From assembly GCF_020745735.1 (NCBI RefSeq), contig NC_083418.1:62141776-62205775 (forward strand): a DNA stretch of 64,000 nt. Reading direction: 5' to 3'. Shown in pieces: positions 15,439-64,000 of the stretch (the stretch's first letter is position 1; the number at the start of each line of letters is the position of its first letter). A program made the position numbers and the translations under genes. The stretch is from Hemiscyllium ocellatum. Taxonomy: Eukaryota. The notes beneath the pieces are model-generated. The model did no database searches. It was not told the DNA's origin and was given only the letters and a program-made list of their open reading frames with translations.

Positions 15439-15458
15439 GGGGGGGGGGGGGGGGGGGG
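15439..15458 (+). repeat. Poly-G run (20 nt)
   Basis: Homopolymer in KBTBD4 intron 3. Confidence 0.9.
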
Positions 15459-16322
15459 AGGAGGAGGGGAGAGAAACAGGATGACACTGACTTATTGAAC
15501 CATTTCCTTGTTATCTCAACAGGTATTTTTATTATGAGTTCAGTGTAAATCAAAAAAAGGTCTTCTTTTGGTCAGTCTCTATGGAGAATACTTACCGGCA
15601 AACCAGTAATTTGGTGGGCTGAAGGGCCTGATCCAGCTGAATTATGTTGTATTGTGTAACCCTTACAGCAAGACAACTGTATAATCGACTTTAAAATGAT
15701 GATGTGTTGTTCGAAAATCTATGTGAATTATCTACAATTTTTGGTAAGACCAGTTTTGGCTAATAATTAAAATGTACTGCGAAATTAAATTTAACTCTAG
15801 AAAGGATGTAAATTTCTTTGCATTTTCAAACTGTGGCAAGATTATCGTGTTTGGTCTTGCCAGGAAAATAACAGAAGATTAGATGTTAAGCTTAGATCCA
15901 TCAGACCAATGCATTTGGTGGTTATTGCAGTAATGCAAAAGAAAAGTAGCCTCTCATTGTTGTCAAGTTTCAAATTACATTGGATTCTGATTACACTGTA
16001 ACTTTTAGAAGAACATCAGCTAAACTCCCAAACTGGCAGCTTATACTGGTATCACCAAACAATATACCCCAAACAATGAAGGTGTACTGTAATAGATGAT
16101 TAGGGCTCCTCACGTTTAGGTTTTACTGTAAATATGTTATGTCCTGCTTCAGTGGTCTAAAGTTACTCAGATCATGATCCTTAACTTTCTTTCCGAACTT
16201 CATAAAAATAGACATATGCAGAGTAGGAAAATGGTATTCAATGACTTTGCCTGCAAATGTTAAACTATTGATTTTTAAAATTTGTATTCAAGATATGGCC
16301 AACACTGGCAAGGTTGAAACTC

Positions 16323-16635
16323 TAGATTAGATTAGACTTACAGTGTGGAAACAGGCCCTTCGGCCCAACAAGTCCACACCGACCCGCCGAAGCGCAACCC
16401 ACCCATACCCCTACATTTACCCCTTACCTAACACTACAGGCAATTTAGCATGGCCAATTCACCTGACCCGCACATCTTTGGACTGTGGGAGGAAACCGGA
16501 GCACCCGGAGGAAACCCACACAGACACGGGGAGAACGTGCAAACTCCACACGGTCAGTCGCCTGAGTCGGGAATTGAACCCGGGTCTCAGGCGCTGTGAG
16601 GCAGCAGTGCTAACCACTGTGCCACCGTGCCGCCC
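16323..16635 (-). mobile_element. HE1-type V-SINE, full length and young
   Basis: Starts GGGCGGCACGGTGGCACAGTGGTTAGCACTGCTG; intact A and B boxes; CTAATCTAATCTA tail. Confidence 0.9.
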
Positions 16636-17347
16636 AAAAAAAAAGCCCATTCCACTGTGATGATGGAGCACCTAAAATAGTTCCAGATGGAGAATTCTAG
16701 GATACCCAATCAGAAACAACAGGGACAGCAAATAAATGTCAAATCAAGCTGGTCTATAGCATGCAGGGAAATTTGGAGGTTTTCTTACAAAATTGCTCAA
16801 AAGTCAAGGGTAGCTGATTGGGCACTCTTGTTCAAGTTACTCATGAACTACATTTACTTGTCATCCATGTAACTTGTCACTTGGCTGCTCAAACTTGAAT
16901 ATTATCCAGACCCTTACTGGAATCTAACATGGACAGTTGCATTACTGAGGATGCCACTGAAATTGTTAGCAGACAGTCTCCATCCTTATGATGGTGGGAA
17001 GGTCACTGATGAAAGTGGTTACAAATGGTTGTGCTAAGGATGCTTCCCTGAAAACTCCTGCCATGATGTCCTGGAACTCAAAAGTAGCTTGTAGGAATGT
17101 TGCATTATTTAGAACTCTGCAAAACTACAAAGCCAACATTCATCACTTATAACCCAAATCATCTGATCAAGCCTTCTCACTATTTGGAAAAATTTGGAAT
17201 AATACATTTCCGGAAAAGGTAAAAAGCAAACTCTTCAATTAGCATTATTCTGCAGGAATTCTTCTGTTTCACACTTACAGGTAACATTAGTTTCAATCTG
17301 TAATGGGGAGGGAGGTACTTACATGATGTAGTTTTGAGGTAACATAC

Positions 17348-17454
17348 CTTTAAACTGGATGTCAGGTTCTCAGAATATTGTGCTCGCTCTTCCTTATTGT
17401 GATCTATCCATGTTTCTATTGCTTTTGCAGGTTTCTGGGAACTGGGAACACCAT
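17348..17454 (-). CDS. KBTBD4: KBTBD4 internal exon (BACK-Kelch linker)
   Basis: ctgtag|...AAG|gtatgt; 107 nt, (D)GVPSSQKPAKAIETWIDHNKEERAQYSENLTSSLK; phases 1 and 0 fit both neighbours. Confidence 0.93.
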
Positions 17455-17902
17455 CTACAGGATCGAGAAAGAAAAACACTTTTTTGATACAATCCGTTCT
17501 GTACTGTTTTTGAGCTGGCTACCAAACTAGTCTGATAGTGGTGTGTTACAGTTTACTCAGAATATGAATTTTTAAAATCTATTCATGGGATGTAGGTATC
17601 ACTGACTAAGCCAGCATTTATTGGTCATGCCCAAAGGGCAGTTAAGAGTCAGCCACATTGCTGACCAGGTAAAGTGGCAGATTTCCATTCCTAAAGAATG
17701 TGAGTAATTGAGATGGATATTTACAACAATTGTTGTCATTTGGCCAGCATTCTATTCTGGATTTTTATTGAATTTAAATGTAATCATCTGCAGAGGTGGG
17801 ATTTGAACTCATGTCCTCAGAACAGTAGTCTTGGATTATGGATTACTAACTCAGTGGTATTAATGCTCACCCCTACCTTATCTTATTTTGGCAATTTGCA
17901 AA

Positions 17903-18233
17903 GATAGATAGACAGACAGACAGGCAGACAGACAGGCAGACAGACAGATTCCCTACAGTGTGGCAACAGGCCCTCGGCCCAACAAGTCCTCACTGACCCT
18001 CTGAAAAGCAACCAACCCAGACCCATTCCCCTTCATTTACCCCTGACTAATGCACCTAACACTATGGGCAATTTAGCACACCCAATTCACCAAACCTGCA
18101 CATCTTTGGACTGTGGGAGGAAACCCCCGCAGACATGGGGAGAACATACAAGCTACACACAGACAGTTGCCCGAGGCGGGAATTGAACCCGGGTCCCTGG
18201 CGCTGTGAGGCAACAGTGCTAATCACTGAACCT
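17903..18233 (-). mobile_element. HE1-type V-SINE with an expanded (GACA)n tail
   Basis: Family similarity; microsatellite at 17903-17947; a plus-strand 5' fragment follows at 18277-18375. Confidence 0.85.
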
Positions 18234-18576
18234 CCCTACACATTTTGGCCTGGAGATATGGTAGAGTCTCCAATATGGGGGCAGCACGGTGGCTCAGTGG
18301 TTAGCACTGCTGCCTCACAACACGAGGGTCCCAGGTTCGATTCCAGCCTTGGGTGACTGTCTGTGTGGAGTTTCGAGCATCCACCACTTTCAACTTAATT
18401 CACCACCTGGTTTGCATGCTCACACTTCTGTCTTCGACCCACTGCAGTGTTACAGTGAAGCCATGCAAACTTGGGAGAAGAGCACCTGAACTTCTGATTA
18501 GACATTTTACAGCCTTCTGGATGCAAGAAAAACTTGAGAAGACTCAATAGAAAAATGAAGACAGGAAAACACATAC

Positions 18577-19180
18577 CTTTAATGATATCTGTAAACAATC
18601 TTACAGGTAGTTTCACAAAATCTTCTGTCTTGTGAAGCTGTGACAGATGTGTTTTTGCACATTGTTTTGCTGCTGTGTACAGTTTCTGGTCACTGTGCTG
18701 ATCCGCTAACCACATGACCTGTAAACAATTCCTGATGTCAACAGTCCGAGCCAGAAACCGAGAGCACTCTTCAAAAAGTGATGTTAACTGATACATATCT
18801 GCCACCTCGTATGTCTCCTGGAGGTCCTCCACTCTCAGTTTTACAGTGCCCCGGTAAATATAGTCCACAAGAAGCTGGAAAACACTTGCATTTACATCTT
18901 TGAGTTCAATAACATCATTATGAGCTTCTTTTAAGTTAGAGGTGAACATGGAACGGAAGAAGCAGCTCTGAGCAGAAAGCACGAGTCGATGCAGCTGGAA
19001 TTCTTTGCCTTCCACAGAGATGGTAACATCTGCAAACAGCCGGTCTTCAAGGCACAGATCCATAATACTCTGGGCAACCCGTACAGAATGGAATCTATCT
19101 GTGAAGGTATAGCTCATAAAATAACTTTCATCTGTCGTTCCTGCGATGGCTGCACCTCCTGCATCACTATTTAGCTCCAT
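18577..19180 (-). CDS. KBTBD4: KBTBD4 BTB-BACK exon (acceptor at 19203, main ATG at 19180)
   Basis: MELNSD...FADVTISVEGKEFQLHRLVLSAQSCFFRSMF...LFTDIIK, then G|gtatgt donor; the three exons total 1569 nt = 522 aa plus stop. Confidence 0.97.
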
Positions 19181-20189
19181 TTTTGCAGCAGATAAAACAG
19201 GACCTATGGGAATAATTTCATTAAAAAATATAGTTTTAGAACCTAAATTATTTAAAAATTAATTTTCTTTTGTACTTTTGTATTATGAAACTTCACTATT
19301 TTAGGAAAATAGAAAGATAAAGCCAGTAATCTCTTTTGCTAATCTACACATTAAAATACACAATTGTGAATATTGTATTTCACCAGTAATATAAAGCAGC
19401 AATGTCTTACTTGAATATATGAACAAATAAACAAGGAACAAGAATAAGCCATTCAGCCCTTTGAGCAGCTCTGCCATTCAATAAGATCATGACTGATCAG
19501 ATTTTAACCACAACATGTCAGGTAGTGGGCAAACCCCAACCCAGAACTTAAACAACCTGATTTAAGGTTTTGAAGAACTGCTGAATAGGGTCTTAATAGA
19601 TTGTGTAGGAACCCTACCTAATGCCAGGAGAGACATTAAATACCTTTTAATAATGATCAATATTTCTTGAGGCAGTATCTTTGGGAAAAGTTATGGCAAA
19701 AATTGTAGTGCAATATGTAGTTCTAATTTTAACAAGACATAACCCAATAGCGCAAGGAAATACTATTTAACAATGTACCAATTAGATAACTGACAGATCA
19801 TAAGCCAGGCTGACAGCAAGAGGCATTTACATATACTGACAGCTGCACATAATAATAGATAGGGTCCTTTTCTTTGCAGATAGCGAGAAATTGTTCACAC
19901 ATCACACCTATTTAATTATAACAAAATAGGAGACAGACATTCTCTGGATTATTACTCAGAGCAAATCACGCACCTACCTGTTTTAAATTTACACAAAGCT
20001 TGGCAGATAACTGTCAGTCATCATTTAACAGGTGCATTCTCAATGCCTCCACCAGAGTCTACTTGCCAATAAATCAGCATGCTTTTCCCATACTGTTCAA
20101 AAATATTATTTCACTTTAAATTGTTAAGTGCAATCCTGGCAAGTGCAAGATGAAAAGCTTAGCCAAGTGCGTTTTTTTTAGCAACATCA

Positions 20190-37662: not shown

Positions 37663-38107
37663 GTAAGTGTGTCAGAATGATACCAAAACATAAATCGAGT
37701 TGTTGAGTTTTATAAATCCAATCAAATATCCGATATTGGAATTTAGTACTATCCCACCACAGAAGTGATTGTTAAATAGGAGGCAATCGTCATTTAAAAT
37801 AACAAGCAGGGTTTTTCATCCAAGCAATGTTTTGAAGATGTCTCACTGTCATTATTGTGCAAATATTAGATGTGGAGAGCTGTTTTTAAAAAAAAAAATC
37901 CTTTCCTAATTCCTTCAATTTGTTTTATTTAACCCCTAAATATATCCAATGGCCAAAGTAATGGTGATAAACTGAAAGGGAAAATAATTTTTTGCCATTA
38001 ATTTGTTTCATTTGTTTGTTATTATATACTGTCTTAGGTTATGCTGTCATGATTTTATGAAGCCTGTATGTGAATATGATATCTGTTTGCTTTGTCTTTT
38101 AAAACAG

Positions 38108-38257
38108 GTAACATGTTTCAACGAGTTGGAGGTTTTTATCCATCCAGATGGCATAATACCAGTGATGACGTTCCTCCGAGATCATACCAATGCTCAGTTT
38201 AAATCTCTTGTAGATGAAACTGCCGTTGATATCCCTTCTCGTCAGTTTAGATTTGAG
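38108..38257 (+). CDS. NDUFS3: NDUFS3 exon 4
   Basis: 150 nt, [50 protein letters not shown]. Confidence 0.95.
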
Positions 38258-39959
38258 GTAATTGAAGAAGTGGCTGGGGAGGGTGAAACAAGTGACTACA
38301 ATTGTGCTATGAAATAGTACATTTATTGTAGCTTTACAATTTTGCTTGTTTGCAAATATTAAATGTAAGATGTTACAAGGAAGCTTTCTTTATTGTTTTG
38401 GAGAGCAACTTTACTCAACAATAATGTATATATTGAAAGGTTCTGATGACAAACGTGTCAAGCATCCTAATCTTAAGCTTTGAAATAAATACAAAAATTA
38501 TTGATGCTGTAACTCAGAAGCCTAAAGAGTTTTTGAGAAGCACAGCAGGTCTGGCAGCATCTGTAGAAAGAAAACAATTGACATTGTGAGTCGAGTGATC
38601 CTCTGTCAGAATTCTCTTTCCCTCTACAGATGGTGATGGACCTGCTGTGCTTTATTTTTGTTCAATCTCTAGATGTGGGCGTCACTAGCCAGACTAGTAA
38701 TTAATGCCTATCGCGAGTTGTCTAGAGGGCAGTTAGGAATCAATGACATTACTGTAGGTCCAACACTCCGTCTATGTTTTTAGCTCTTTCACTCATATCT
38801 GTCATAAGAGGATTAATACTCATATTACTTGGTGGGATGATTGCTCCACACAGAATCTCATGTTTTGAATTCCAGCAGAAGCAATAAGGTTACCAGCTGG
38901 AAGATGAATTGTTAAAATATAGAGTCATAGAGTTTTTATACTATTATAACACAGAAAAAAGCCATTTGCCCTCTCAAGTCCTTCTTGGCCAATAACCTTG
39001 GATGCCTTGGCATCATAAGTGTGCATCTAAATATTTTTTAAATATTGAGGGTTTCTGCTTCTACCACCCTTACTGGTGGAGTTCCAGATTCTCAAAAGCA
39101 ATTTCCTCTTATCTCCTCTAAACCTGCTGCATCAAATCTTTGCATCTTTGTCATTGATCCTTCCACCAAGTGGAAACCACCTTTCTGTCTACCCTGTCTA
39201 TGTTCCTCAATCATATTCCATCTCTTGCTCCCTTCTTGATTAAGCTAGTACCACATTAGCTGTCTCCCAGTTCTTTGGCATCTTTCCTGTGTCCGGTGGC
39301 ACAGTGTTCCTGCTATTGCCAATGTTCCTGCTATTGATTTGCCTCACTCAACAGCCTGGGATTTGTCTCCCCCAGCCTTAGAGATTTATCCAATTTTAAA
39401 TCTGCCAGAACTCTCAGAATCTCACTGTCTTTGGCTGATTACTATAAGTATATCACAGACTTTTTTGATAAACCTGTATTCTGTACCCACGTCATCCTAC
39501 TCATTTGTGAAAACTGACTCAGTATTGATTTAGTTTACTATCTAGATCCTCCAGCTCCATGCAGATTAGCACTGCAGTCCTAAATGGGCTCTATTCTTTC
39601 CCTAGTTCTTCTTTTCCCCATAATGTACCTGTAAAATAATTTAGGACTGTCCTTTGTTTTACCTGCCACTATTCTTTCATGCTTCCATTTGTTCTCCTAA
39701 TTCCCTTTTTAAATTTCCCCTTGCACATTCTGTACTCCTGGTGAGCGTCTGCAGATTTGTGCTCTTGGTATCTATCATGAGCTTCCCTTTTTCACTTTAT
39801 CTAATCCTGGATATCCCTTAATGTCTTTTCTATGCTCAAGATTCAAAATAGATCAGTGACCAGTGGCTGACAAAGTTAAAGATTGTATAAGATTAAAAGA
39901 TCAGGCTTGTAAATGGCCAGATAGTGATAAATTTGAGGATTGAGAAGTCTTTGCAATGC

Positions 39960-41770
39960 AGCAAAGTGGACCAAGAAGTCTGATTGGCAAAGGAAGAATC
40001 AAATAGGAATACAATCTGGCAAACTACATAACAAATCAGCTGTACAAGCTTCTACAGGTTTATAAAAAAGAGACATTTGATTAAGACAATGTGGGTCTAT
40101 TAAAATCCAAAGTCAAGAGAATTTTTAATGGGGAATAAAGAAATGGCAGAGAACCTAAATTAGTACTTTGTGTCTATTTTCACTGAGGAAGGTACAAGAA
40201 ATCTCCCAGAATCACAGATCCTAGTGAGTAAGGAGTATGAGGATCTGTAGAAAATTAGAATTAGTAAGAAGGTAGTTCTAGAGAAATTAGTGGGGTGGAA
40301 AGTTAAAAGTCCCTGGAACCTGATAGTCTAGTTTTTGAGGATGTAACTAACAAAATTGATGAAGGGGAGTTGATGGATGTAGTAAATTTGGATCTTGATA
40401 AGGTTGCCCACAGGAGATTGGTTAATAAAATTAAACATGATGGGATTGGAGATAAAGTACAAGCATGGATTAAGGATAGACTACAAATACAAAGCAGATC
40501 AGTAATAGGTTATTCTCACATATTTAGAGTGTAACTAACGGAGTGTGCAAGAATCAATACTTGAGGCCCCAGTTGTAATGATTTTAACGTGGGGACCAAA
40601 TGTAATATTTTCAGGTTTGCAGATGATAGAAAGCTAAGCAGAAATGAGGAAGATGTAAACCATTTTGAGAAGGATTTGTGGAGAGAATGCAGAGTTAATG
40701 TTTTGGGTGCAGTGACTATTCTGTGGGTCAGAAGGGTCACTGAATCTGAAACTTTAACTCTGCTTTCTCTCCACAGATACTACCTTAGGTTTTTTTCAGC
40801 AATTTCTGATTTAGTTTTTGATTTCCACATTCACAGTTTTTTGAGCGGTTTTTTAAAATGAGAATTTGGACAGGTTTAGTGATTGGTTAAGAGTGAGTCA
40901 GATGGAAAATAATTTGGAAAAGTATAAGGGTATACATTTTGTTTGGAAAAACACGTGCAGAATATTTCTTAAATGGTGAGATTGTAAAGTGGAAAGTGTA
41001 GTTGTGCAAAGGGACTAGGTTGTTCTTGGCATTAAGTCACTGAAGGCTAAAATGCAGGTAATTGGGTGATGAAACAGTAGCCCTCATTATATGAGGATTT
41101 GAATACAAGAGTATTGAAGTTGTGCTTCAATTGTTTAGCAGCTTGGTTAGACTGCACTTGAAGAACTTGTGAGAATAACCTATTACTGATCTGCTTTGTA
41201 TTTGCAGTCGATCCTTAATCCATGCTTGTACTTTATCTCCAATCCCATCATGTCCAGTTTTGATCTCCTTATCTCAGAAAAGATGTTCTTGCCATAGAGG
41301 GAGTGAAGTGAAGATTCACCAGACTTGTTTCTGGGATTGTGAGACTGGTTGATGAGAGATTGGGCAAAATGGGCCTTGTTCTCTCAAGTTCTGAAGAATG
41401 AGAGATGGTCTAACTGAAGAGATAAAAGGGGTAGATGCAGATAAAATGTTCCACCTGGTTGGGCAATTGGGAACTGGGGATACAATTTTAAAAATAAGAT
41501 AGATACTATTTAGGACTGTTCAGAATTTTTGTTTACCCCAATTCTTTCTGGAAGATCAATCTTTGAGTATAGTTAAAGTAGAGGTTGTTGAATCTTTGAT
41601 TATCAATGGTGTAAAGGGTTACGAGAACAGTGAGGGTAAAAGACATGAATTGTTTAGACATATTTATTGGATAGAGATATGGATGAAAATGAACAGTGTA
41701 GGTTAGATGGGCTTCAGGTTGGCGCAACATTGAGAGTTGAAGGGCCTGTACTACGCTGTTATGTTCTATG
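39960..41770 (+). mobile_element. CR1 LINE, decayed
   Basis: FADDRKL and other RT remnants, with many stops. Confidence 0.7.
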
Positions 41771-42576
41771 TTTAAGCAGCCTGATCTTACTAAATAGCAG
41801 AGCAGGCTTGATATGCTAAGTGACCCACTCCTGTTACTGAGACCTTACAGACACAGAATTTAATGTACTTGCAAAAACACAAATTGGAAAATTGGCATCC
41901 ATTCAAGAGATAAGACCCAAAACTTGAGATAAGGGAGTTGAATAAAAATTGATGTAAAAAGTGTCATGGACTGTGAAGCTTGTGCAAATTATGTCATGTT
42001 GGTTAAAAAAAGTATGTTCAACGATGGACTGAAGAAAAGCTTAATTCTATCAACTCAAGATAAACAAAGTCTTCCCAATCAGGTTTGTACAGCGGAAAAA
42101 TCTAGTCTTGAGAAAACAAAACAAGAGACAAGATAGAGAAGATTGAAGTCTAAAACCTATAAATGAGAAGTCTGAGTGTTTCTTATTCTGAATGTTGAGA
42201 AGTATATAGCTTGAGTTAGACTACATCACTGTCTAAGCTGAAAATTTATTGTGACTCTATCACATTAAAGTAGTGTCAGACTGAACTATGAACCAGTCCT
42301 TTCTCATAATAACTGGTCTCAGAAACCTCTTTTGGAAAAAAAAGAGTATAAGATTAGTCATTTAAAAATAACCTAAAAATAATAGCAGAAATGCCAAAAT
42401 GCTTGTCAGATCCCCTTTGTTACGATGGGTTTGCTATAAAGTAGGTATTGGCTTAAAACATAGCATTGAGAATTGGATAAATTGTGGAAGAACTTCGATT
42501 TGATTGGGGTTTGGGTTACCCCATGCAGATATTGAGATTTAATTTTAAGATCTCTTCTGTTCTCACTTTCCAACAG

Positions 42577-42702
42577 ATTGTATATAACCTGCTTTCGCTG
42601 CAATTTAACTCTCGTATCCGTGTGAAGACTTACACTGATGAGTTGACACCGCTGGATTCCCTGGTACCTGTGTTCCAGGCTGCAAACTGGTATGAGAGAG
42701 AG
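42577..42702 (+). CDS. NDUFS3: NDUFS3 exon 5
   Basis: 126 nt, [25 protein letters not shown]...AANWYERE. Confidence 0.96.
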
Positions 42703-43769
42703 GTGAGTTGAATAAATTGGATGAAATGTTATGAGAAGACGTTTATTACCAGCCAATTTCTAAGCAAATCAAGATTGAGTCAGAGAACCAAAATAATTGA
42801 ATCACAGGCAAGAGACTATTTAACATTGTAGGCCAAGTGTGTAGGTAGTAAAATGGACGGGTGAGAAATTACACCAACTTCCAAATTCTTAGCAGAAGAC
42901 ATTTATCTTCTATAAATTAACACATTTATAAGAGTAGGCATTGTCTGGTTGTGAGCAGAATTTGAGGTAGAAGTAAAAGCTGCAAAGAACTGTTGAGACG
43001 GGAAACATTTGGAAGACGAAGTTATGTGCTGTGTTACACGTGGAACTCTGGTAGAGTTCTAATCAGAATGTTGACTTATAGTTTGCTGAGCATCAGAAAT
43101 AGAATGTAGCAACTAGGATGACTGTTGTGGGGGTGGGCAAATAATAGTCGATAGAATCTATCAGGCCACTGTTGAATTGTGGAGATGGCTAAATGTTTTG
43201 TTATTTAGATTGGTTTGCGAATAACTGTGGTGAAGTTCAAGATTGAGTCAATGTATGTTGTTTGGGGAAGGAGTAGGTTTGATCAGCTAGATCACCTTTT
43301 TTCCATTCATGCTTTGATCTTTTCTTTGCTGAAATCAAGAACATGGGACTTTCATGGAGTAGCCAGACACTGATTGTTGTAGAAAAGTGTGGCATTGAAA
43401 AAGCACAGTGGGTCAGGCAGCATCTGAGGAGCAGGACAGTCGATACTTTGGGCATAAACCCTTCATCAAGAATAAAGGGCTTATCTCGAACTGATCATTG
43501 TTTACAGTATTATAATTCCCAAAGTTAATTATGTGGTGAGCAACTTATGTGATTTAAAACTATTATGCTGTGCTTATGGCCTCTAATCACACGAAAAGTA
43601 GGGTGTTAAAATGTAACTGAGTATGTTATAAGTTTCTGTCTTGGCTCAATTGTTTTTTTTAAGAATTTGTTTCAAATTTAACACACACTTTTATAATGTC
43701 TTAGACAAAATACAGGTAACATTTTGCTCTATATGTAAATCTTAGAAATATCAAATTTTAAAATGTTAA

Positions 43770-43934
<165 letters not shown>

Positions 43935-44194
43935 TAAAATAATATCTTTTAAAGCTGTACATCTATGAAGCTTTTTCTTTTTCCTCCTCGTTCTGTGCTC
44001 CTACTCAGAAAACATCTTGGCAACACCCTACCCCTCCTAAAAGCCACTTGAGTCAACTTTGTATGTTAGAATGAAAATCTCTTCTAACTAAATTGACACA
44101 TTTAATTTAAAATAATTGCAAAAAAAAGGCTCATGTTTCAATATTCTACTCACTTTAAATATTATACCCATGACCATGTCATTGTCATTTGGTC

Positions 44195-44700
44195 ATATAG
44201 CATGGAAAGAGGCCTTTCAGCCCACCATGTCTGGCCAGTCATCAAGCACCTATCCACTCAAATCCCATTTTCCAGCACTTGGTCTTTGATCTTCTATGCT
44301 GTAGCATTTTAGGTGTTCATCTGCATACTACAAAAATGTTGTGATGCTTCCAGCCTCTACTGACAATGAGTTCCAGATACCATCACCTTCTGGGTGAAAA
44401 GAACTCTCCTTAAGTCCTGCTAAAGCTTCTGCTCCTTAGCTTAAATGTTTGCTAACTGGTAATTGACCCTGCAAGGAAAAAGATTTGCTCTATCTATGCC
44501 ACTCATACTCCTGTAGACCTTTATCAGGTCCCGTTTTGGTCTTCTCTTCTCCCTATTCTATCTAGTCTCTATTCATAACTCTGAAAAGCTTCAACCTGGG
44601 CAACGTTTTGATGAATCTCCTTTGCACCTTCTTGAGTACAATCTCATCCTCCACATCGTGTGGTTATCAGGAATCTGCACAATACTTCAGCTGTGGTTTA
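44195..44700 (-). mobile_element. CR1 LINE 3' fragment
   Basis: CR1 3' UTR and C-terminal similarity on the minus strand. Confidence 0.62.
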
Positions 44701-44771
44701 ACTTATATCATATACTGCTTTGGCAGTTCTTGTGTTCTTTGTCTTTGGCTAACTGTTCCCCTTCTTTCTAG

Positions 44772-44939
44772 GTACGTTATGATGATGAGGTAAAACGTGT
44801 TGTAGCTGAGCCTATTGAACTTACCCAGGAATTCCGCAAATTTGACCTCAACAGTCCATGGGAAGCTTTCCCAGCCCACCGTGAACCAGCTGATGTACTC
44901 AAACTTGAAGCTGGAGAGAAAGGTCCTGAGACAAAATGA
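44772..44939 (+). CDS. NDUFS3: NDUFS3 exon 7 (terminal)
   Basis: [34 protein letters not shown]...GPETK*; the seven exons total 786 nt = 261 aa plus stop. Confidence 0.96.
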
Positions 44940-51330: not shown

Positions 51331-54300
51331 GCTCAAGTTATGACAGATTAAGATTAAATGCTACAATTAATTCCTCTGTTCCAAGCAGGCTCATAAACCA
51401 CAGATGCTTCCATATGTAACTGGGCATCCACAATTCCTGAGGTTGTTCAAGAGACAGTTTGAGATTCAAAGAGCTTAATTGCTGTCTGGAAGGAAATGGG
51501 TTTTGAGAGACAGGTGGGATCTGTCGATTTTAACCCGGTCTTCGCTCTGTCATATCATATCTTCACTTCTAATAATAATTTCTAAAATTCATACATTTTC
51601 TGTTACTTTTACATATTTCTATGTATATTGATCCCAATTATCAAATTATCTGAATTACTCAAGGACTGTACCAAGTTGATTAAACCTGCAGTTAATTATG
51701 ACGAAGCTGCTCCTTTAACAAGGTTATCAGTCCTTGTCTTTTTTTTTGGAGAGGTCATAAATGACTCCAAAAAGTCTGGGGTCGGAACATTTTAAGGCCA
51801 ATTTGATAACAGCTAACAGATACTGTCTCAGATAGAAGGCTTTCGAGTTTAAAAAAAAACACTTGTACAATGAAAAGGGAGTGGCCAGTTCTTCCAATTC
51901 AGCTTTTTCTGGTTTTGTTTTGTTTTTAGCAGTAGTTGGAAAAAGCTGCTGGACTCAAAGAAGCAGGTCCAGGCTGATCCTCTCTGTCTCCTCTGTTTAG
52001 GGATGTGTAGATTAGGTGCATTAGTCAGGAGTAATGTAAACGAACAGGGTAGGAGAATGGCTCTGGGTAGGACACTGTTTGGAGGGCGGTGTGGACTTGT
52101 TGGGCCTAATGGCCTGTTTCCACAATATAGGGACTCTATGACACTTTGAAATATGTGGATTCTCAACATTTTGCATGGTAGAATGTTATTATAATGGAGA
52201 TTTATTTTAAATTTTTGGATTTCAAATAGACATGGTCAAGTGATCACCTCTAACTGGAGAACTGTAATGTCAATTTCTCTAATACTTCCTATTATTTAAA
52301 TAGATGTTTAATTATTATTAATAATGACAATTTTTAGATGCTAATACTTATGAAAGGCATTACATGCATTTTGAATCTGACAATCTTGTGGAATAACTTA
52401 TAAAGTTGGAAGTAAAAATATCTATTTCTAATAATACATTGCCATTGGTAGAATTCGGGTCACTGACAGGACAAATCCCATGTTATTGTCAAGGTTAGTG
52501 TGTTACTCAAGTAGGCAGCTTTAAATCAGGGATAGGACATAAATTATATCTGTCTAAAAGAATTTGACAGTACAGACTTGATGGGGCAAAGGGCCTCTTC
52601 TGTACTGTGTGATTCAATGATTGTAGGTACTGAATTTATTATTGTTTACATTATAACAGGAATGTGAGATTGTGCAGTTGCCTGACCTAAAGTTTGAACT
52701 GTATATCCACACATTTTGATGAGTTATGATTTAGTTGTAATTGCCAATTAAATTAAATTCTAAAATATTCCACAAAACCCAAATTGATTTAAATAAGTAA
52801 TTAGTTTCAGAGCAAAGCCAACTAGCCAATTGTGAAACTTTCATTTAAGTTAGATGTATAAGAATGAATATTTGTAAGAATATTTCCAAGACATATGCAA
52901 TTCAAGATTCTGATTCCTTCTCTCCCCCTTTGCTTTTCAGAGTCTGTGGGAATCTGCTCAAGATTTGCTCACTGTTTCCTGAAGAAAGCAACAATGATTT
53001 GGAATGGGAAGACAGAAATGAAAGAATTTTCAAAGTTGAAAATACTAGTCTCTGGCTAAAACTGTGGGGTCAAAGAAACCATTTATTAACATGTGACTTA
53101 CCAGAAATTAACAGGGCTTTAACACAACATGATTATCTACAACCCAAAACTGACAGGATTGAGATTTTCAGCTCGGTAGACAGTATTCTTGCCTTTGGGT
53201 TAGAAAGTTGTGAGTATTTAAATTTTGATTGAGAGAGGGCTTTTGAGGATGCTATTCATGTTGCAGTGTGATATCTATCCATAAGTCATGACTGAATTAA
53301 CTTTATAAAAAGTTACATGCTCAAAAAAGGACATTAGACTCCCCCGAAAGTATTTGTGCAGCAGAATAATCAGAGCCATATTTTCTCACCCCCAAACCAC
53401 TTTACCTTGATGAATAGATTATACAAAAAAACTTAAATTTGGTTGACAACGTAGGATGTTTCCTATCCAGGTTAATGGACATTGCATTGAGAGTTTCTAC
53501 TAGCCACTTTAGCAGGTCAGAGGTTGAGGTTCTTTGTGTTTATGGATGGTACATTATGCAGACACTGATCAAGGGAAGTGGTGAATAAATGAATACAATT
53601 CAAAAGCCAGACACATCCCTTGGATTTCCTTAAAACTTCCCTTGCTCTGCCACTCTAACTACACAGAGAGAATGGCAGAAATCTCACTTCCATGTGCACA
53701 TTCCTGATACTGTAAATCCATTTTATAGACTGTTAGCTAAATAAATATTAAAGTTTCATTGGCACATTCTGGAGGGGGAGTTGACTTGAGATCACTTCAT
53801 TTTGTTTTACTTTACAGACATTATTTCAAAACTGGGATTCTGGAACCAGTGGATACAGGATTAATGTGCAGCCTTGGAAATGAAAACTTTCACTTCGCAG
53901 TTAACCATTTCCCTAAGTGATTAAAGATTAGGAGTTGTGCTAGCATGAGTGAGCAGCACCATCAGATAACATGCCACACTGTTCAGTACACAGCTCAATG
54001 AGGTAATTGTGATGGTTATTCAAAACTCAATCTTTTCTTTTATCATAGGAAAATATCAGCATTAGGTGGTTAACTTAATCAACAAACGGATAATTGGAAA
54101 GGAATTTAATAATGACATAAATTGCATTATGAATGTTCTGTGGAGTATATACACAAGAGTTTAAAATTCCTAAATTACATCCATCTATGGCAATTCGCTA
54201 TTTCTCTATGATTGTGCGTATAAATGTAGGCCATTTGGCACAATTAGTTGATGTTCAATGTTTTAGCCACCACTTCCTGATGAAATTTCTCTTCACCCCA

Positions 54301-54484
54301 GCACTAATGTATCCTCAGCTGTGACCCCTGATTTAGGACTCACCAGTCATGGGCAATATCCTTTCTGCATTTCCCTGTTTAGAATTTTATAAGTTTTCTA
54401 TGATATCCACCCTCAATTTTTTAAAGTCCTAACCAAAGCTAGGGAAGTGTTTTTTGAGCCCCTTGCTGAGATAAAGCCAGGGAA

Positions 54485-54712
54485 GAAACTGCTGAAAATG
54501 TGTTGCTGGTCAAAGCACAGCAGGTCAGGCAACATCCAAGGAACAGGAAATTCGACGTTTCGGGCCAGAGCCCTTCATCTGAATTCCTGATGAAGGGCTG
54601 TGGCCCGAAACGTCGAATTTCCTGTTCCTTGGATGCTGCCTGACCTGGTGTGCTTTGACCAGCAACACATTTTCAGCTCTGATCTCCAGCATCTGCAGAC
54701 CTCACTTTTTAC
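54485..54712 (+). mobile_element. Penelope-derived hairpin mini-element inserted in a CR1
   Basis: Inverted arms at 54491-54579 / 54589-54677; 14-bp TSD ATAAAGCCAGGGAA at 54471-54484 and 54713-54726. Confidence 0.88.
54581..54620 (+). ncRNA. Minimal hammerhead ribozyme, intact core
   Basis: GAAUUC-CUGAUGA-A-GGGC-UGUG-GCCC-GAAA-CGUC-GAAUUU; 6-bp stem I. Confidence 0.75.
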
Positions 54713-56104
54713 ATAAAGCCAGGGAACTATAGACTGGTGAGTCTGACATTGATGGTAGATAAGTTGTTGAAGGGAATACAGAGGGACAGGATTTACATGT
54801 ATTTGGATAAACAAGGACTGATTAGGGATAGTCAGCATGTCTTTGTTCATGGGAAATCATATCTCACTAACTTGATTGAGTTTTTTGAAGAACTACCAAA
54901 GAGATGTTGGGGGCAGAGCAGTGGAGAGATCTATGTGGACTTCAGTAAGGCATTTGACAACGTTCCTCATTGTAGACTAGATAGCAAGGTTAGGTCACAT
55001 GGAATAGAGGGAGAACTAGCCATTTGGATACAGAACTGGCTTGAAGGTAGAAGACAGAGGGTGGTGGTGGTGGGTTGCTTTGCAGACTGGAGGCCTGTGT
55101 CCAGCAATGTGCCACAAGGATTGTTGCTGGGTCCACTGATTTTGTCATTTATGGAAATGATTTGGATGTGAACAAAGAAGTTATAGTTAGTAATTGCAGC
55201 TGACACCAAAATTAGGGGTGTGGCAAAAAAGGTTACCTTTGAATACAATAGGATTTTGATCAGACAGGCCAATGGGCTTAGGAGTGGCAGATGGAGTTTA
55301 ATTTAGATAAATGTGAGGTGCTGTGTTCCGGAAAGACAAATCACGGCAGGGCTTATACACTTAATGGTAAGATCCTAGGGAGCGTTGCTGAACAAAGAAA
55401 CCTTGGAGTGCAGGTTCATAGTTCCTTGAAATTGGAGTTTCAGGCAGGTAGGATTGAGAAGAAGGCATCCAGTATACTTGCCTTTATTTGTCAGAGCATT
55501 GAGTATAGGAGTTGGGAGATTATGTTGCAGCTGCACAGGACATTGGTTCGGCCACTTTGCGTGCATTTCTGATCTTCCTCCTATCAGGAGGATGTAGTGA
55601 AACTTGAAAGGGTTCAAAAAAGATTTAAAAGGGTGTTGCCAAGGTTGGAGGATTTGAGCTAAAGGGAGAGGTTGAATAGGCTGGGGCTGTTTTCCCTAGA
55701 GCATCAGAGGCTGAGGGATGACCTTACAGAGGTTTATAAAGTCATGATGGGCATGGATAGGGTAAATAGACAAGATCTTTTCCCTGGGGTGGGGGCGTCC
55801 TGAACACGAGGGCATAGGTTTAGGGTGAGAGGGGAAAGATTTAAAAGGGACCGAAGGAATAACGTTTTCACACAGAAGGTGGTGTGTGTATGGCATGCAC
55901 TGCCAGAGGAAGTGGTGGAGGCTGGTATAATTACAACATTTAAAAGGAATCTGGATGGGGTACATGTATAGGAAGGGTTTGGAGGGATGTGGGCCGGGTG
56001 CTGGCAGGTGGAACTAGATTAGGTTGAAATATCAGTTGGCATGGACAGGTTGGACTGAAGTGTCTGTTTCCGTGCTGTCCATCTCTATGACTCCATGACT
56101 CTAT

Positions 56105-58945
56105 AATTCAGCCTCTCTTCTTATGTCAGTCCTGTCATCCTTGGAATCAATTTGGTAAATCTTCACTGCACTCCCTCTATAGCTAGAACTGCTTCCTCAG
56201 TTAGGGAGACCAAAATTGCACACAATACTCCAAATGTGATCTCACCAAGGCCCTGTGCAATTGTGACAAGGTATCCCTGCTCCTGTGCACAACTCCTCTT
56301 GCTATGAGGCCAACATACAGTTTGTCTTCTTCACCTCACCTTGCTGCATCTCCTTGCTTACTTTCAGCAACTGGTATATGAGGACACCTAGGTCTCATTG
56401 CATGTCCCCATTTTCCAATCGATCGCCGTTCAGATCATAATTCCCCTTCTTGTTGTAGCTAATAAAGTGGATAACATCACATTTATTCATATTATACTTC
56501 ATTTGCCATGCATTTGTCCACTCATTCCACCTGAACACATCAAAACGAGGCACCTCTGCACCCTCCTCTGTAGTATTGGTAAACTTGGAGATATTACGTT
56601 TACTCCCATCAACTAAATTGTTAAGATATACGGTAGTGAATTGCTGTAGTCAAGCACCGATCCCTGCCAGACCCCCAATCACTACCTGCCATTCAGAAAA
56701 AGATGCATTTATGCTGACTCTTTGTTTCCTGTCAGCTGACCAATTCTCAATCCAATGTGCTTTAATTTTACATGTTGATCTCTTTTACAATCAATTTGTA
56801 TGCAAGCCTACTCTTGTACTCTATTTTTCACATCTTAATCAATCTCTTTGCTCCCTTTGCTGAAATCTAAATGGCTCCCAGTGTTCAGATCTGCTGCTTT
56901 TTAGACTAATTTGTATGCTCATTTCTTGGATCCAATGTTAGCCGTAATTTCCCTTGTTAGCCATGGTTGGGCCAACTTTCCCATTTCATTTTTGTGCCAA
57001 GCAGGAACAAGCAATTGTTGCAATGTGCACTTTAATTGTTGCCATTACCTATCCTCTGTCATTCGTTTGAGTAACATTTCCCAATTTCTTACAGCCACCT
57101 GCCTTATACCATCATAGTTTTCTTTATTTGGATTCAGGGCCTAGTCTCAGAATCAACTAAGTCACTCTCCATCTTTATGAATAATTCTATCCTATTGCAA
57201 TTGTCTATTTTTATATCTCCAGGTAAGTTTGAATTCTGATTATCACAATTTAGTGTACCAAAAACCATACTCTTAAATAGGTGTCACTAGCACTGGCACA
57301 AAACCTTGTTTCACCCTTTTCTTGAAGTGATTCCCAGTGTTTCCTGCTTGAAGACAATAGACAATAGGTGCAATGAGTAGGCCACTTGGCCCTTTGAGCC
57401 AGCACCACCATTCATGGCTGATCATCGACAATCAGTATCCTGTTCCTGCCTTATCCCGATAACCCTTGATTCCATTATCCTTAAGAGTTCTATCCATCTC
57501 TTTCTTGAAGGAATCCAGAGACTTGGTCTTCACTGCTTTCTGGGATAGAGCATTCTATATACCCATCACTCTCTGGGTGAAGATATTTCTCCTCGACTCT
57601 GTTCTAAATGGCTTATCCCTTATTTTCAAACTGTGTTCTCTGGTTCTGGACTCACCCATCAGCGAAAATATGCTTCTTGCCTCCAGAGTGTCCAATCCTT
57701 TAATAATCTTATATGTCTCAACCAGATCCCCTCTCATCCTTCTAAACTCAAGTGTGTACAAACCCAATCGCTCCAATCTTTCAACATATGATAGTCCAGC
57801 CATTCTGGGAATTGACCTCATGAACCTACGCTGCACTCCCTCAATAGCCAGAACATCCTTCCTCAAAATGGGAGACCAAAACTGCACACAATACTTCAGG
57901 TGCGGTCTCACCAGGGCCCTGTACAGTTGCAGAAGGACCTCTTTGCTCCTATACTCAATTCCTCTTGTTATGAAGGCCAGCATGTCATTAGCTTTCTTCA
58001 CTGCCTACTGTACCTGGGTGCTTGCGTAACTTTTTCACGCAGAGGCTGGTACATGTATGGAATGAGCTGTCAGACGAAGTAGTGGAGTCTGGTACAATTA
58101 CAACATTTTAGAGGCATTTGGATGGGTATATGAATAGGAAAGATTTGGAGGGATATGGGCCGGATGCTGGCAGGTGGGACTAGATTGGGTTGGGATATCT
58201 GGTTGGCATGGATGGGTTGGACCGAAGGATCTGTTTCTGTGCTGTACATCTCTATGACTCTATGACTGATGTACAAGAACACCTAGATCGCGTACTTTCC
58301 CTTTACCTAACTTGACACCATTTCGATAGTAATTTGCCTTCCTGTTTTTGCCACCAAAGTGTATAGCCACACATTTATCCACATTAAACTGCATCTGCCA
58401 TGCATCTGTCCACTCACCTAGCCTGACCAAGTCACCCTGTATTCTTATAACATCCTCCTCACATTTCATCCTGCCAACCAGCTTTGTGTTATCAGCACAT
58501 TTGCTAATATTACTTTTAATGCCTACATCTATATCATTAATGTACACTGTAAACAGCTGTGGTCCCTGCACCGAACTTTGTGATACCCCACTGGTCACTG
58601 CCTGCCATTCCAAAAGGGACCTGTTTATCACTTTGCTTCCTGTCAGCCAGCCAATTTTCTTTCCAAGTCAATATTTTGCTACCAATATCATGTGCACTAA
58701 TTCTGCTCACTAATCTCCTATGTGGGACTTTATCAAAGGCTTTCTGAAAGTCCAGGTACACTACATCTACTGGCTTTCCCTTGACCATCTTCATAGTTAC
58801 ATCCTCAGAAAATTCTAGAGGATTAGTCAAGCACGTTTTCCCCTTCACAAATCCATGCTGACTCTGACCTATCCTGTTACTGCTTTCCAAATGAGTCGTA
58901 ATTTCACCTTTTATAATTGACTCCAGCATCTTTCCCACCACTGAC
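56105..58945 (-). mobile_element. Cluster of minus-strand CR1 fragments with a nested plus-strand CR1 3' end (58028-58266)
   Basis: RT ORF pieces at 57555-58001, 58260-58631 and 58537-58947. Confidence 0.82.
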
Positions 58946-59657
58946 ATGAAGGGAAGACATGAAAGGAAAGCAAAAGAAAAAAGTTAAAATAGAAAAATGA
59001 AATTAAGTAAATGAATAATTAAACACTTGGTTTTATTATTTAAAAATAGGAAAGAGAAAAGCCTAAACAATACTATTGATGCTACTGGATATCTCTTATT
59101 CTTGGTCTGAATGAAATTTTGAATCTCACCTTCATTTTCTTCCAGATCCATGTTCCTTACTTTCTGGTAAATGATTTGAAGGTGACTCCAATCACTTTGT
59201 AGATTAATCTGTTATGGAGATCTCATTTAGTTTGTACTTTGTTCAGATCACATCACATTCCCTGCTGAAAGTGATGGTACTTAATTCCTCCCCTATATGC
59301 TTTAGAATTAATGGAGTATTCAAAGTATCGTGCACTGTCTATATTTTCGATATTTTTTCCAACCTAGATCAAATCCTGTTATTACATGTGTCCACATGTT
59401 GTGCTATGGCAGCTTTTGCAGTGAAAATTACAAGAAAGACCAATTTGAAAACACGTTTATTGCAAATGCAAAACTATATCAGGAGACATGGTGAATGCAG
59501 AAAGAACAAAAACGTTTGAAGTTATTCACATTTATTTGCTTGGTGGAGGTGGACATTTATTGTTCAAATGAGATTTACTGTAAACAGATCAATGAATACT
59601 GCAAAGCTGAACCAATCCATAAGATGGCAGTATTCTGCATGTCTGCAACAACAGGAG

Positions 59658-59862
59658 TGAAAAATGAGGTCTGCAGATGCTGGAGATCACAGCTGAAAAT
59701 GTGTTGCTGGTCAAAGCACAGCAGGCCAGGCAGCATCTCAGGAATAGAGAATTCGACGTTTCGAGCATATTCCTGATGAAGGGCTTATGCTCGAAACGTC
59801 GAATTCTCTATTCCTGAGATGCTGCCTGGCCTGCTGTGCTTTGACCAGCAACACATTTTCAG
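59658..59862 (+). mobile_element. Young Penelope-derived hairpin mini-element
   Basis: Perfect 80-bp inverted repeat at 59690-59769 / 59786-59865; 15-bp TSD CTGCAACAACAGGAG at 59643-59657 and 59863-59877. Confidence 0.88.
59769..59804 (+). ncRNA. Minimal hammerhead ribozyme, intact core
   Basis: AUUC-CUGAUGA-A-GGGC-UUAU-GCUC-GAAA-CGUC-GAAU. Confidence 0.72.
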
Positions 59863-61643
59863 CTGCAACAACAGGAGACTGAGAACTCTGGTAAATGAGA
59901 CTAAAGCTTAAAGGTGATAGAATGGATCAAAAATAGCTATTGGCATTAAGTAACAGAAGCAACAAATTCTAACAGTAAAGATAAATTAACAGTTGAGATT
60001 TTAATATTTATGTTATGTATATGAGGCACAAAAAAGTAAACTAGAAAGAAAAAAAACTTTTCTTATTGAAATCTTAATTTCAATAAGATTAAAACATAAA
60101 ATTACAATCAAGAATGCTACATAAAGTAACAATTAATTTAATCATGAAAAGAAAAGGACCCACTCACAATAAAAAGTTTTGAAGTGTGGTTAAGTGAGAC
60201 TGTTGGTTTATGAGTGATATGGTAAAGAGGCAGGTCACCACATCAGCTGCCACAGAGGTAGAAGAGGTAGAGAGAGTTCCTGTTATTTCAGAGTTTACTT
60301 CATAGTATGAAACAGATGGGAGTCCTCTGTGAAAAACATATTCTGTGAGAGAAAGGTAATGGAGAGGTTGTCACTGCTATCAATACTTGTACAATGACAA
60401 ATTTAATTCAGTTTGGAAAGGCATTCTGAGCATTGTGAGTCATGTTTTTGTTAAGTTTATTCTCAGATATACAGCTTAATATTACATAAGATTCTTGTCC
60501 TGTCATATGTATCTTGTATTTATTATGTGGAATAAAATATGCTAAAAGATAAAAAGGTAAAGGGGCAAGAGACAGCACTTGATCAGTTCCATTTATTTTA
60601 TACTTAGGTACATATTATGTTTGTATTTTAAATTAGCATTTGATAAAACAAATATGCATCAAAGAGAATGTTTTACAGTTTCATAATTGACAGCTGCTTT
60701 TTTACCCATTTCACTGGATTTCAGAGAATATTGAAGTTGCATTATGTTAGAAAGAACGTTAAGGAAAGTATGAAGAGTTTGTGGGAAACACCTTAGGAAA
60801 GCGAGTGAAATGATAGTTTCTAAGAAATGATGGGAACTAATTCAAACTCTAGTGGTTAATATTGATAAAATCCGTTTACTTTTGGTGTGTTAACTTTTAA
60901 AAGGTACAAACCTGATTGGAAATAGGCTGTGAATGTGTAGTTTAAAAAAAACATTTTTAAATGAAAACCAATATTCTCTGTTAGCAGTTTAGATTCTGGC
61001 ATGCATAGGTGTTTGGAAAATATCAAACATGTTACGCAGCTTGCAAACATTATCATTGCTGACTTATCTTACAAAATGTAATATTTGGTTATGTGTAGAA
61101 AATAACATGAAAAATGTTTTAAAAACTTAATTTGTGCTGTTCTGGTTTCGTGGGCTAGGTGGTGCAACTGCATTATCTTGTAACCTTCCTCACTCTATAA
61201 GTTGATTAAAATCTAAACTGGGATCTGTGCGGGTTCTGACATTGTACCGAGGGCTGTATTAAAGTTTGGAAGTGTTTCCTTAGGTATAATCTGTACTCTT
61301 AAGAGGTAAAAGTTCACAGTAAAAATTGATGTATTCCAGATAACACAAAACTAGTTTGTGTACAGCATTGCATTAAATATCAAAATATTCATTCTGAGGA
61401 CTGTACAAATAACTAATAATACATAATTCTCCTTGCTCGAAATTATACTTTGTATGATTCATCATGAGAAAAGGGTGAATCTTCAGATTTAGATAGTTCT
61501 TAAAGACTTGGGTCACCCTAACCTGTTTTCACAAACCTTGGGCTTTTTGTCTTTTGTTAAATACTTAAGTTGGCAGGAGCCTCTTTTATGTAATGAATCA
61601 TTGACATTGACTGACCACTGAGAAAAGACTTTAAAGTAAAGTT

Positions 61644-61805
61644 AAAAATCACGCAACACCAGGTTTAGTCCAACAAGTTTATTTGGAAGCACTAGCTTTC
61701 GGAGTGCTGCTCCTTCATCACCTGATAGGTCAACCTGTTGGACTATAGCCTGGTGGTGTTGTGTGATTTTTAACTTCGTCCATCCTAGTCCAACACATCA
61801 TGTCT
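61644..61805. mobile_element. Penelope-derived hairpin mini-element
   Basis: Inverted arms; 16-bp TSD with one mismatch, ACTTT(A/G)AAGTAAAGTT, at 61628-61643 and 61806-61821; minus-strand hammerhead broken at C3 by the junction. Confidence 0.75.
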
Positions 61806-62045
61806 ACTTTGAAGTAAAGTTGCCATAGCCCCAGAGAACTGTGTCTCATTAGAGAGGGACAAGTGGTGGTAGTTTAATCTGAGGGTCATCGTGAGGGGAG
61901 AGATTGAGAAGGAGGAATCTTCATGGCAACCTCAACCAGTACCGAAATTGAACCTGTACTTTTGGTATCACTCTGTATTGTTAACTAGTCATCCAACCAA
62001 CTAAGCTAACTGACCATCAACTGCAATTAAAAAGCAACAGTAATT

Positions 62046-62362
62046 AGATTAGATTCCCTACAGTGTGGAAACAGGCCCTTTGGCCCAATAAGTGCACAGC
62101 GACCCTCTGAAGAGTAACGCACCCAGACTCATTTCCCTACATTTACCCCTGACAAATACCTTAACACTATGGGGCAATTTAGCATGGCCAATTCACCTGA
62201 CCTGCACATCTTTGGATTGTGGGAGGAAACCGGAGCACCCAGAGAAAACCCACGCAGACACAGGGAGAATGTGCAAACTCCACACAGACAGCTGCCTGTG
62301 GCTGGAATTGAACCCGGGTTCCTGGCACTGTGAGGCAGCAATACTAACCACTGAGCCACCGT
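62046..62362 (-). mobile_element. HE1-type V-SINE
   Basis: Family similarity over the full length. Confidence 0.85.
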
Positions 62363-63391
62363 GATGTGATTAATTTCATGCAAGTCTGCTTTGCACTCTA
62401 AGCTGAGGACATTGATTGAAACTACCTGTATTTAGTTATCTGCCATTAAATGCAGGTTGGTTAGATATGCTCTCTTGTTGTCACTTATGCATTTCTATGT
62501 GATTCGCTCCCATCCTTTTAAACTCCCTTTCTGTAAAAATTTTTAGTACGTGGCTAAACTGCACTTCAAATAAATTTAATTAACTAGATTAAAATTGAAG
62601 GAGAGTCAATTCCAAGGTTTTCTTGAGTACAAGTGAGTGGAGTTATTGCCTAGTAAAGCTGATAAAAATAATGAAACAATGCACTAACACTCACGTATAT
62701 ACAGACAGGTGATAACATTGTACAGAGAAAGCACTGGAGGAAGGTATTTGAACATGGAGGTGGTTAGGCAAGCTGCAGTTTAACATTATTTTAACATGTC
62801 CTTAAGTTACGAGAGTGAAAACCAAAGTCTCAATTATTCATCTGTTGTCCTGTTTTCTCAGGCGTGATGAAGCTTGAAGATAACCTACATGTCTGGCTGA
62901 ACAGTACTTTTACCAAGTTGCATTTTCACGCTGCCTGTAAAATCTGTAGTGAGAATCTTAAATGAATAAAATAAAAATCATGTGGGAATAGTTTTCTAAG
63001 TTTTTTCTTTCTTAGCTAAGGAAATGTTTTTCATCATTAAAAGTGCAACTTTAACATAACTGACCCAATGGGAATAGAAGCAGATAGCCTTCCTCACACC
63101 TGCTCAAACATACTCTTCACTCAAATGAGCAGCTTTCCCCATACTGTAATTCCCAGCAGGGTTTTAGGTTAATGTTAATCCCCTGATATTGGATATGATG
63201 GTCCTTTATTGAACTGGATCAGAAACTCAATTTTTATACGGAAATGCAGTTTTCTGAATATTACATAATTTAAATGTGAGTGCTGTGAATTAGTGTTGAA
63301 CATAAAACTGCTTTGCAGCTGAAGGTGCTGAACTCTCATCCTATTTTAACCAAGAATCATTTTTCTTTACTTCTGTCAGATACCAGTCATT

Positions 63392-64000
63392 ATGGAAATG
63401 AAGATGCCTCTACGACTGTTACCCGATGACTTCTTATATGCAGAAACCAGGCCAACCAAAAATACCCAGAAGGAAGTCATAGTTTCAATGGAAAAGCTTT
63501 ATGAGACAGAGACGGTTACACCAGTTCATGGCCTACTGCGGCATTCCCCATTACCACAGAGCAAACCAGTGGGAACTATGCCATTAGAAACACTGCCTTT
63601 GGACAAAAAAACTTTTGAAGATAAGGCCCTGGAACAAATGCTTTTAGAATGCGACCCATCAAAAAACAAGTCCTGTGACTTTAGCCAAATAAAAGCAAAA
63701 TCTTTGGAAGAGCATATATTGCGATTGCAAAATCTCTGTCGCATTTGTGGAGTTGCCTTTAACACCAACTGTTATGATATGAAATACCCAGTAAATGGTC
63801 CTGTTGATGATGTCACCCAAGAGGTGCTCAAGAAAATGGGACATGGCGAGTGTTTTTGGCCAGAACTCATCCGTAACACATTTAGGATCGATGTCAAGAC
63901 AGATACAGAAGCCAGATACCCCACTCACTTCTGCTATAACTGTTGGCGTATTGTGATTCAGACAATTAACAATACAACGAATGAAGATGCATTCTTTCCG
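63392..64000 (+). CDS. RAG1: RAG1 or RAG1-like recombinase, N-terminal 203 codons, cut off by the window end
   Basis: Polypyrimidine tract plus AG at 63378-63379, ATG at 63392 with A at -3 and G at +4, no stop to 64000; contains LQNLCRICG, YPVNGPVDD, FWPELI, FRIDVKTD, PTHFCYNCW and AFFP, matching the RAG1 N-terminal zinc-binding region (CND). Confidence 0.9.
   Translation, partial: MEMKMPLRLLPDDFLYAETRPTKNTQKEVIVSMEKLYETETVTPVHGLLRHSPLPQSKPVGTMPLETLPLDKKTFEDKALEQMLLECDPSKNKSCDFSQIKAKSLEEHILRLQNLCRICGVAFNTNCYDMKYPVNGPVDDVTQEVLKKMGHGECFWPELIRNTFRIDVKTDTEARYPTHFCYNCWRIVIQTINNTTNEDAFFP

Follow-up and report, generated by a model that had tools for sequence, protein, structure and literature searches.

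The window, a stretch of 64,000 nucleotides from the epaulette shark Hemiscyllium ocellatum, ends inside an open reading frame that resembles the start of RAG1, and the nearest intact gene upstream is NDUFS3 and not TRAF6, the upstream neighbour of mammalian RAG1. This raises the question of whether the frame belongs to the shark's ordinary RAG1, in a locus with rearranged surroundings, or to a second RAG1 copy at a site of its own, possibly without RAG2; an earlier note on this DNA had left both options standing. We put the probability at about 95% that positions 63392-64000 belong to canonical epaulette shark RAG1, as the 5' end of its single coding exon. The RAG1-RAG2 locus is already publicly annotated, and its only unusual point is a set of upstream neighbours unlike those found in human.

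The RAG1 gene from candidate first exon to stop codon

From the ATG at 63392, 203 codons run without a stop to the end of the window, where the frame is still open. The ATG lies 12 nt inside the putative exon that follows the splice acceptor and has A at -3 and G at +4, and the encoded peptide contains two cysteine pairs, CRIC (63737-63748) and CYNC (63932-63943); the earlier note had described the acceptor, the spacing, the open codons and the four cysteines correctly. Its assignment of the frame to the RAG1 family is likewise borne out, as Pfam RAG1_imp_bd (PF12560) matches the 203-aa peptide with E=5.5e-34 (118.5 bits against a cut-off of 23.3) and the peptide matches residues 66-196 of mouse RAG1 in solved structures with E about 1e-22. 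The remark that the gene had been missed by the ORF track is right in that the frame is absent from the list; this is merely a window-end effect, because the list leaves out frames that run off an end. The window contains zero N runs. Coordinates of all features are collected in Table 1.

Table 1. Features located in the window, in window coordinates, with the basis for each
Feature	Position	Strand	Basis or remark
PTPMT1-like dual-specificity phosphatase exons	1081-6814	+	DSPc E=3.1e-13 at 4014-4241; flanking exon ORFs by eye only
KBTBD4-like gene (BTB, BACK and Kelch exons)	13833-19258	-	Pfam BTB E=8.7e-28, BACK, Kelch_6
NDUFS3 3' exons	37988-44939	+	Complex1_30kDa matches in three exon ORFs
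ELF5-like ETS-domain exon relic	52902-53130	+	ancestral frame legible only in parts
ELF5-like last-exon relic	53818-53920	+	degenerate wing and recognition residues
Conserved block ending in donor AAAG/GTAA	60178-60355	+	GT at 60356-60357; conserved in six elasmobranchs
Polypyrimidine tract and AG splice acceptor of RAG1 coding exon	63360-63379	+	sequence; AG at 63378-63379
RAG1 coding exon, first 203 codons	63392-64000	+	translation, Pfam RAG1_imp_bd, uninterrupted continuation past window end

The frame was followed past the window in the public record (GCA_020745735.1, CM036676.1). The locus fetched from this record (L002) is identical at its positions 1-10423 to window positions 53578-64000, with 0 mismatches over 10,423 nt, so that window base 1 corresponds to record base 62,141,776. 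The RAG1 frame in the record has 1,048 uninterrupted codons and closes with a stop 2,538 nt beyond the window; this places the gene at 62,205,167-62,208,313 on the plus strand. Pfam recognises RAG1_imp_bd over residues 71-297 of the full frame (E=4.8e-56) and, past the window end, the RING domain (zf-C3HC4, residues 299-337), zinc finger A (zf-RAG1, 360-389) and the RAG1 core (394-1038, 1252.8 bits). The GGRPR motif of the nonamer-binding region is kept, in a stretch, GGRPR...LSLTRRAQKHRLR, that aligns to mouse RAG1, and the catalytic residues D600, D708 and E962 of mouse correspond to D611, D720 and E974 of the epaulette protein (alignment to 9jpu_A, positions counted by hand). The RING domain, zinc finger, nonamer-binding motif and DDE triad, which the earlier note had named as the parts to look for in a complete gene, are thus all intact in the 1,048-codon frame.

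Comparison with five elasmobranchs gave dN/dS values of 0.22-0.35 over the 203 window codons and 0.06-0.08 over the core. These ratios indicate that the RAG1 N-terminus is less constrained than the core, yet clearly under purifying selection; weaker constraint is usual for the non-core region of RAG1.

Upstream of the coding exon, the block that ends in the donor AAAG/GTAA (the slash marks the predicted exon boundary) has counterparts of 78-91% identity in whale shark, Heterodontus, Heptranchias, skate and stingray, where its distance to the RAG1 start codon is 2.4-2.8 kb. The donor itself is invariant and conservation falls off beyond it. At the other side of the presumed intron, an AG lies about 12 nt ahead of the first ATG, at the same position in all five of these elasmobranchs. 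The block is probably the RAG1 promoter together with a non-coding exon 1, and we infer a layout in which exon 1 ends at 60355 and is followed by an intron of ~3.0 kb, the acceptor at 63379 and the start codon at 63392. The start MEM.MP is conserved across elasmobranchs, Heterodontus having lost just the first ATG. The public H. ocellatum RAG1 model has 986 aa; it begins at Met63 and from there on agrees with the window peptide at 100% identity. This model is probably truncated by 62 N-terminal residues, because the ATG at 63392 and the 62 codons that precede Met63 (63392-63577) are conserved across sharks and rays.

Orthology, copy number and the RAG2 partner

Cartilaginous-fish RAG1 proteins were recovered by a profile search, the profile being built from turtle RAG1 and the 203-aa fragment. 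Identity to the full epaulette frame drops with species distance: 98.0% for Chiloscyllium punctatum, 97.5% for one further RAG1 protein in the comparison set, 91.9% for whale shark, 90.7% for Stegostoma, 86.7% for Heterodontus, 84.1% for Scyliorhinus, 83.7% for Heptranchias and 77-80% for rays and skates (skate 80.2%). Over the N-terminal part encoded in the window, the values are 97% for C. punctatum and 86% for whale shark. A maximum-likelihood tree of 22 RAG1 proteins mirrors the species tree and places the window's RAG1 in a hemiscylliid clade with Chiloscyllium (support 100/100), where its end branch is 0.014 long and the median is 0.11. The tree that the earlier note had proposed as a check therefore groups the protein with canonical hemiscylliid RAG1 at normal branch length. 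The closest relative of known annotation, C. punctatum RAG1 (XP_072448749.1, 1,048 aa), has the same length and the same MEMKMP start as the epaulette frame, and the two differ by species-level substitutions only.

The exact RAG1 protein was found at one place only (GCA_020745735.1, on CM036676.1). A RAG1 of 1,021 aa in the comparison set (P0146) was ruled out as a second copy on the strength of its identity, only 85%, and of its place in the tree, between Heptranchias and the galeomorphs; it falls in the Heterodontus/Heptranchias cluster and probably comes from another squalomorph species and not from H. ocellatum. Single copy number apart, all features tested identify the epaulette gene as a full RAG1 family member.

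The mouse protein (PDB 6oem, 9jpu) resembles the epaulette one in domain order, DDE triad and nonamer-binding motif, and mammalian RAG1 is also similar in having a convergent RAG2 and, as seems probable for the shark, a non-coding first exon followed by a single coding exon; the N-terminal 200 residues, in contrast, are only about 40% identical between mammals and epaulette shark. Amphioxus RAG1L (ProtoRAG, PDB 6b40) shares the fold family of the catalytic core, matching residues 406-1012 of the full frame with E=6.3e-80, but the match is far weaker than that to vertebrate RAG1 (272 versus 1493 bits), and in that search the N-terminal zinc- and importin-binding region, the part present in the window, found no match in RAG1L.

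A RAG2 gene lies downstream on the same record, on the minus strand at 62,235,549-62,237,108. Its protein (XP_060694568.1, 519 aa) carries the Pfam domains RAG2 and RAG2_PHD. RAG1 and RAG2 are convergent, with a stop-to-stop distance of 27.2 kb, and the interval between them was read except for about 7.2 kb. The convergent RAG2 that the earlier note had suggested seeking on this side is accordingly present, and its suggestion that the gene might lack RAG2 falls. A convergent RAG2 is the layout of other jawed vertebrates, and we found the same orientation in elephant shark (4.7 kb apart), gar, a Danio species and a bird. In mouse the spacing is about 8 kb, measured between transcripts, as against 27.2 kb between stops in the epaulette shark. 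A search for IFTAP in the 10 kb on the upstream side of RAG2 (L006 1-10000) turned up no recognisable coding exon; most of this DNA is LINE debris and a G-rich minisatellite. Long tracts of the G-rich, minisatellite-like kind, with GGVG/WVLG repeats in translation, occur there (L006 2200-4250) and also at 23.1-24.3 kb of the window, upstream of the NDUFS3 exons.

Upstream neighbours of RAG1

Reading toward RAG1, the order of genes in the window is PTPMT1-like, KBTBD4-like, NDUFS3, a decayed ELF5-like gene and RAG1. Within the KBTBD4-like gene, Pfam places BTB and BACK at 18398-19258 and Kelch at 13833-14735. The last coding exon of NDUFS3 (44772-44936, stop 44937-44939) is 87% identical to the end of a 261-aa Complex1_30kDa gene of whale shark, and its stop lies 18,453 nt from the RAG1 ATG, in agreement with the 18.4 kb given by the earlier note. 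That note had also seen no TRAF6 exon in between. Between 45 and 63.4 kb there are 34 stop-to-stop ORFs that reach 80 aa, and none of them has a Pfam match to MATH or zf-TRAF; the only matches in this set are to reverse transcriptase, plus one weak match to Ets. For ORFs of 100 aa or more between 1 and 45 kb (27 of 34 searched here, the rest having already been scanned), Pfam gave only reverse transcriptase. The claim thus holds for every large ORF in the 63 kb upstream of RAG1. The human-type arrangement, with TRAF6 directly upstream, is not what this shark has; NDUFS3 and the KBTBD4-like and PTPMT1-like genes are found instead.

The same neighbour is present in a second species of the order Orectolobiformes, to which H. 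ocellatum belongs. In whale shark, the called 261-aa Complex1_30kDa (NDUFS3) gene precedes RAG1 on the same strand, with 9.8 kb between its end and RAG1. The NDUFS3-RAG1 interval is wholly colinear with window 44.8-63.4 kb, so the order NDUFS3-RAG1 is common at least to Orectolobiformes. The extra length of the epaulette interval is due mostly to LINE and SINE insertions. LINE reverse-transcriptase fragments (Pfam RVT_1) lie on both strands of the window at 54.6-58.9, 21.8-22.4, 25.2-27.3 and 32.4-33.0 kb. A SINE-like repeat of ~200 bp recurs at 14.9-15.2, 16.4-16.7, 18.05-18.4, 29.0-29.3, 33.3-33.5, 34.2-34.5 and 62.1-62.4 kb and is 70-77% identical to sequence ahead of rag1 in a Danio species (L008 2004-2190 and 3625-3833), which points to a SINE core of great age and wide distribution.

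Between NDUFS3 and RAG1, at 52.9-53.9 kb, lies the decayed ELF5-like ETS gene, which the earlier note had overlooked and at which the public H. ocellatum annotation calls no gene. The ETS-domain exon scores below the Pfam threshold (Ets E=0.0027, 18.4 bits against a cut-off of 26.9), and its best match among solved ETS domains is human ELF5 (ESE-2, an epithelial ETS factor; PDB 1wwx) with E=1.4e-6. It is 82.5% identical to whale shark DNA (L009 4507-4705), with two 1-bp indels between the species. The DNA of the last-exon relic is 84.8% identical to the last exon of a Heptranchias gene and 78% identical to a skate exon. In Heptranchias, a called gene of 259 aa with SAM_PNT and Ets domains ends 8.8 kb upstream of RAG1, and its last exon again matches ELF5 best among solved ETS domains (E=1.6e-12). 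The same ELF5-like last exon occurs in thorny skate in a called 131-aa gene that ends 9.7 kb upstream of RAG1; besides the window and L009, the positions of the ELF5-like gene in our set are L010 1071-1181 and L004 196-306. As this ETS neighbour is present in both shark and skate, the arrangement is at least as old as the elasmobranchs.

Unlike ELF5, the epaulette and whale shark relics have a broken frame and replaced key residues. In the epaulette relic, no single frame encodes an intact ETS domain in which the residues of recognition helix and wing are conserved; its wing motif is LMCSLG, as against LMYKFG in Heptranchias and LVYKFG in human ELF5, and no PNT-domain exon was found in 45-52.9 kb. 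In whale shark, the first part of the ETS exon is in frame and is followed by a frameshift leading to LWGQRKH and two stops; the ELF5-like last exon was not found upstream of RAG1 in this species. We read the relic as an ELF5-like pseudogene, derived from ELF5 proper or from a paralogue. The gene was probably inactivated before the split between hemiscylliids and whale shark, because the frame change before LWGQR can be read as common to both. Since this relic lies in the interval, NDUFS3 is the nearest intact gene and not the original neighbour of RAG1.

A search of the literature on synteny of the RAG locus, including that of cartilaginous fish, found nothing relevant. In the loci of Heterodontus, Hemitrygon, gar, a Danio species and a bird, the 10 kb upstream of RAG1 contain no called gene; the elephant shark RAG1 locus was covered for 1.3 kb upstream, and its gene model is spliced. 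In human, all the genes in question are presumably on 11p, with ELF5 at 11p13, TRAF6-RAG1-RAG2-IFTAP at 11p12 and PTPMT1-KBTBD4-NDUFS3 at 11p11.2. If so, the shark order looks like a reshuffling within one old linkage group. Of the earlier note's proposal that the shark RAG locus is rearranged, the part concerning the upstream flank stands, in that this flank differs from human; the RAG2 side is canonical and convergent.

Competing readings of the locus and what they imply

The most reasonable account is that the window ends in canonical RAG1. The gene would consist of a non-coding exon 1, an intron and one coding exon of 1,048 codons, the usual vertebrate layout, and the protein would carry all the parts of a V(D)J recombinase, from the importin-binding region through RING, zinc finger A and the nonamer-binding region to the DDE core; the upstream flank would owe its difference from human to an ordinary reordering of genes that we take to lie on human 11p. 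A second RAG1 copy, transposon-like or duplicated, at its own site and without RAG2, is extremely improbable. The only observation in its favour is that the upstream neighbour is NDUFS3 and not TRAF6, yet that order recurs in whale shark, the convergent RAG2 is in place, the protein is nearly identical to annotated C. punctatum RAG1 and sits on a normal short branch in the canonical clade, and the conserved block and intron position are common to skate, stingray, Heptranchias and Heterodontus. We give just as little credence to the idea that a pseudogene or retrocopy of RAG1 happens to have an N-terminus that is open within the window. The identity of about 40% to tetrapods might be taken that way, but the frame has no stop over its full length, the DDE triad is intact, both N-terminus and core bear dN/dS ratios well below one, and the N-terminus remains close to those of C. 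punctatum and whale shark; a retrocopy is further opposed by the upstream intron, which has been retained.

How canonical RAG1 came to have these neighbours is a separate matter. TRAF6-RAG1-RAG2-IFTAP is presumably widespread in bony vertebrates, and this spread, together with the presumed location of both shark neighbours on human 11p, which fits local reshuffling, speaks for TRAF6-RAG1 being ancestral and the elasmobranch order being derived by intrachromosomal rearrangement in the cartilaginous-fish lineage. Against this, the comparison has no outgroup to give polarity, TRAF6 adjacency was seen in none of the species (in gar, Danio and bird the nearest 10 kb upstream of RAG1 are devoid of called genes), and the ETS neighbour in shark and skate makes the order at least elasmobranch-old; we consider the chances of a derived order to be about even. 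It is also conceivable, if rather doubtful, that the order NDUFS3/ELF5-like/RAG1/RAG2 goes back to ancestral jawed vertebrates and was already in place when the RAG transposon was domesticated, that TRAF6 adjacency arose later, in bony vertebrates, and that the ELF5-like last exon now serves as a regulatory element of RAG1 in hemiscylliids. This exon is still 85% identical to that of Heptranchias despite having lost its coding sense.

For the biology of RAG, the canonical reading of this locus has little import, as nothing here points to an extra or RAG2-less shark RAG1, and what remains is an ordinary difference in synteny and some small points of annotation. The gains are a candidate RAG1 promoter and exon 1, located by conservation between sharks and rays, and a public 986-aa model that can be recognised as probably truncated at its N-terminus. 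Finally, the ELF5-like gene, in Orectolobiformes apparently a pseudogene, and NDUFS3 beyond it provide a marker for reconstructing how the neighbourhood of the RAG genes has changed.
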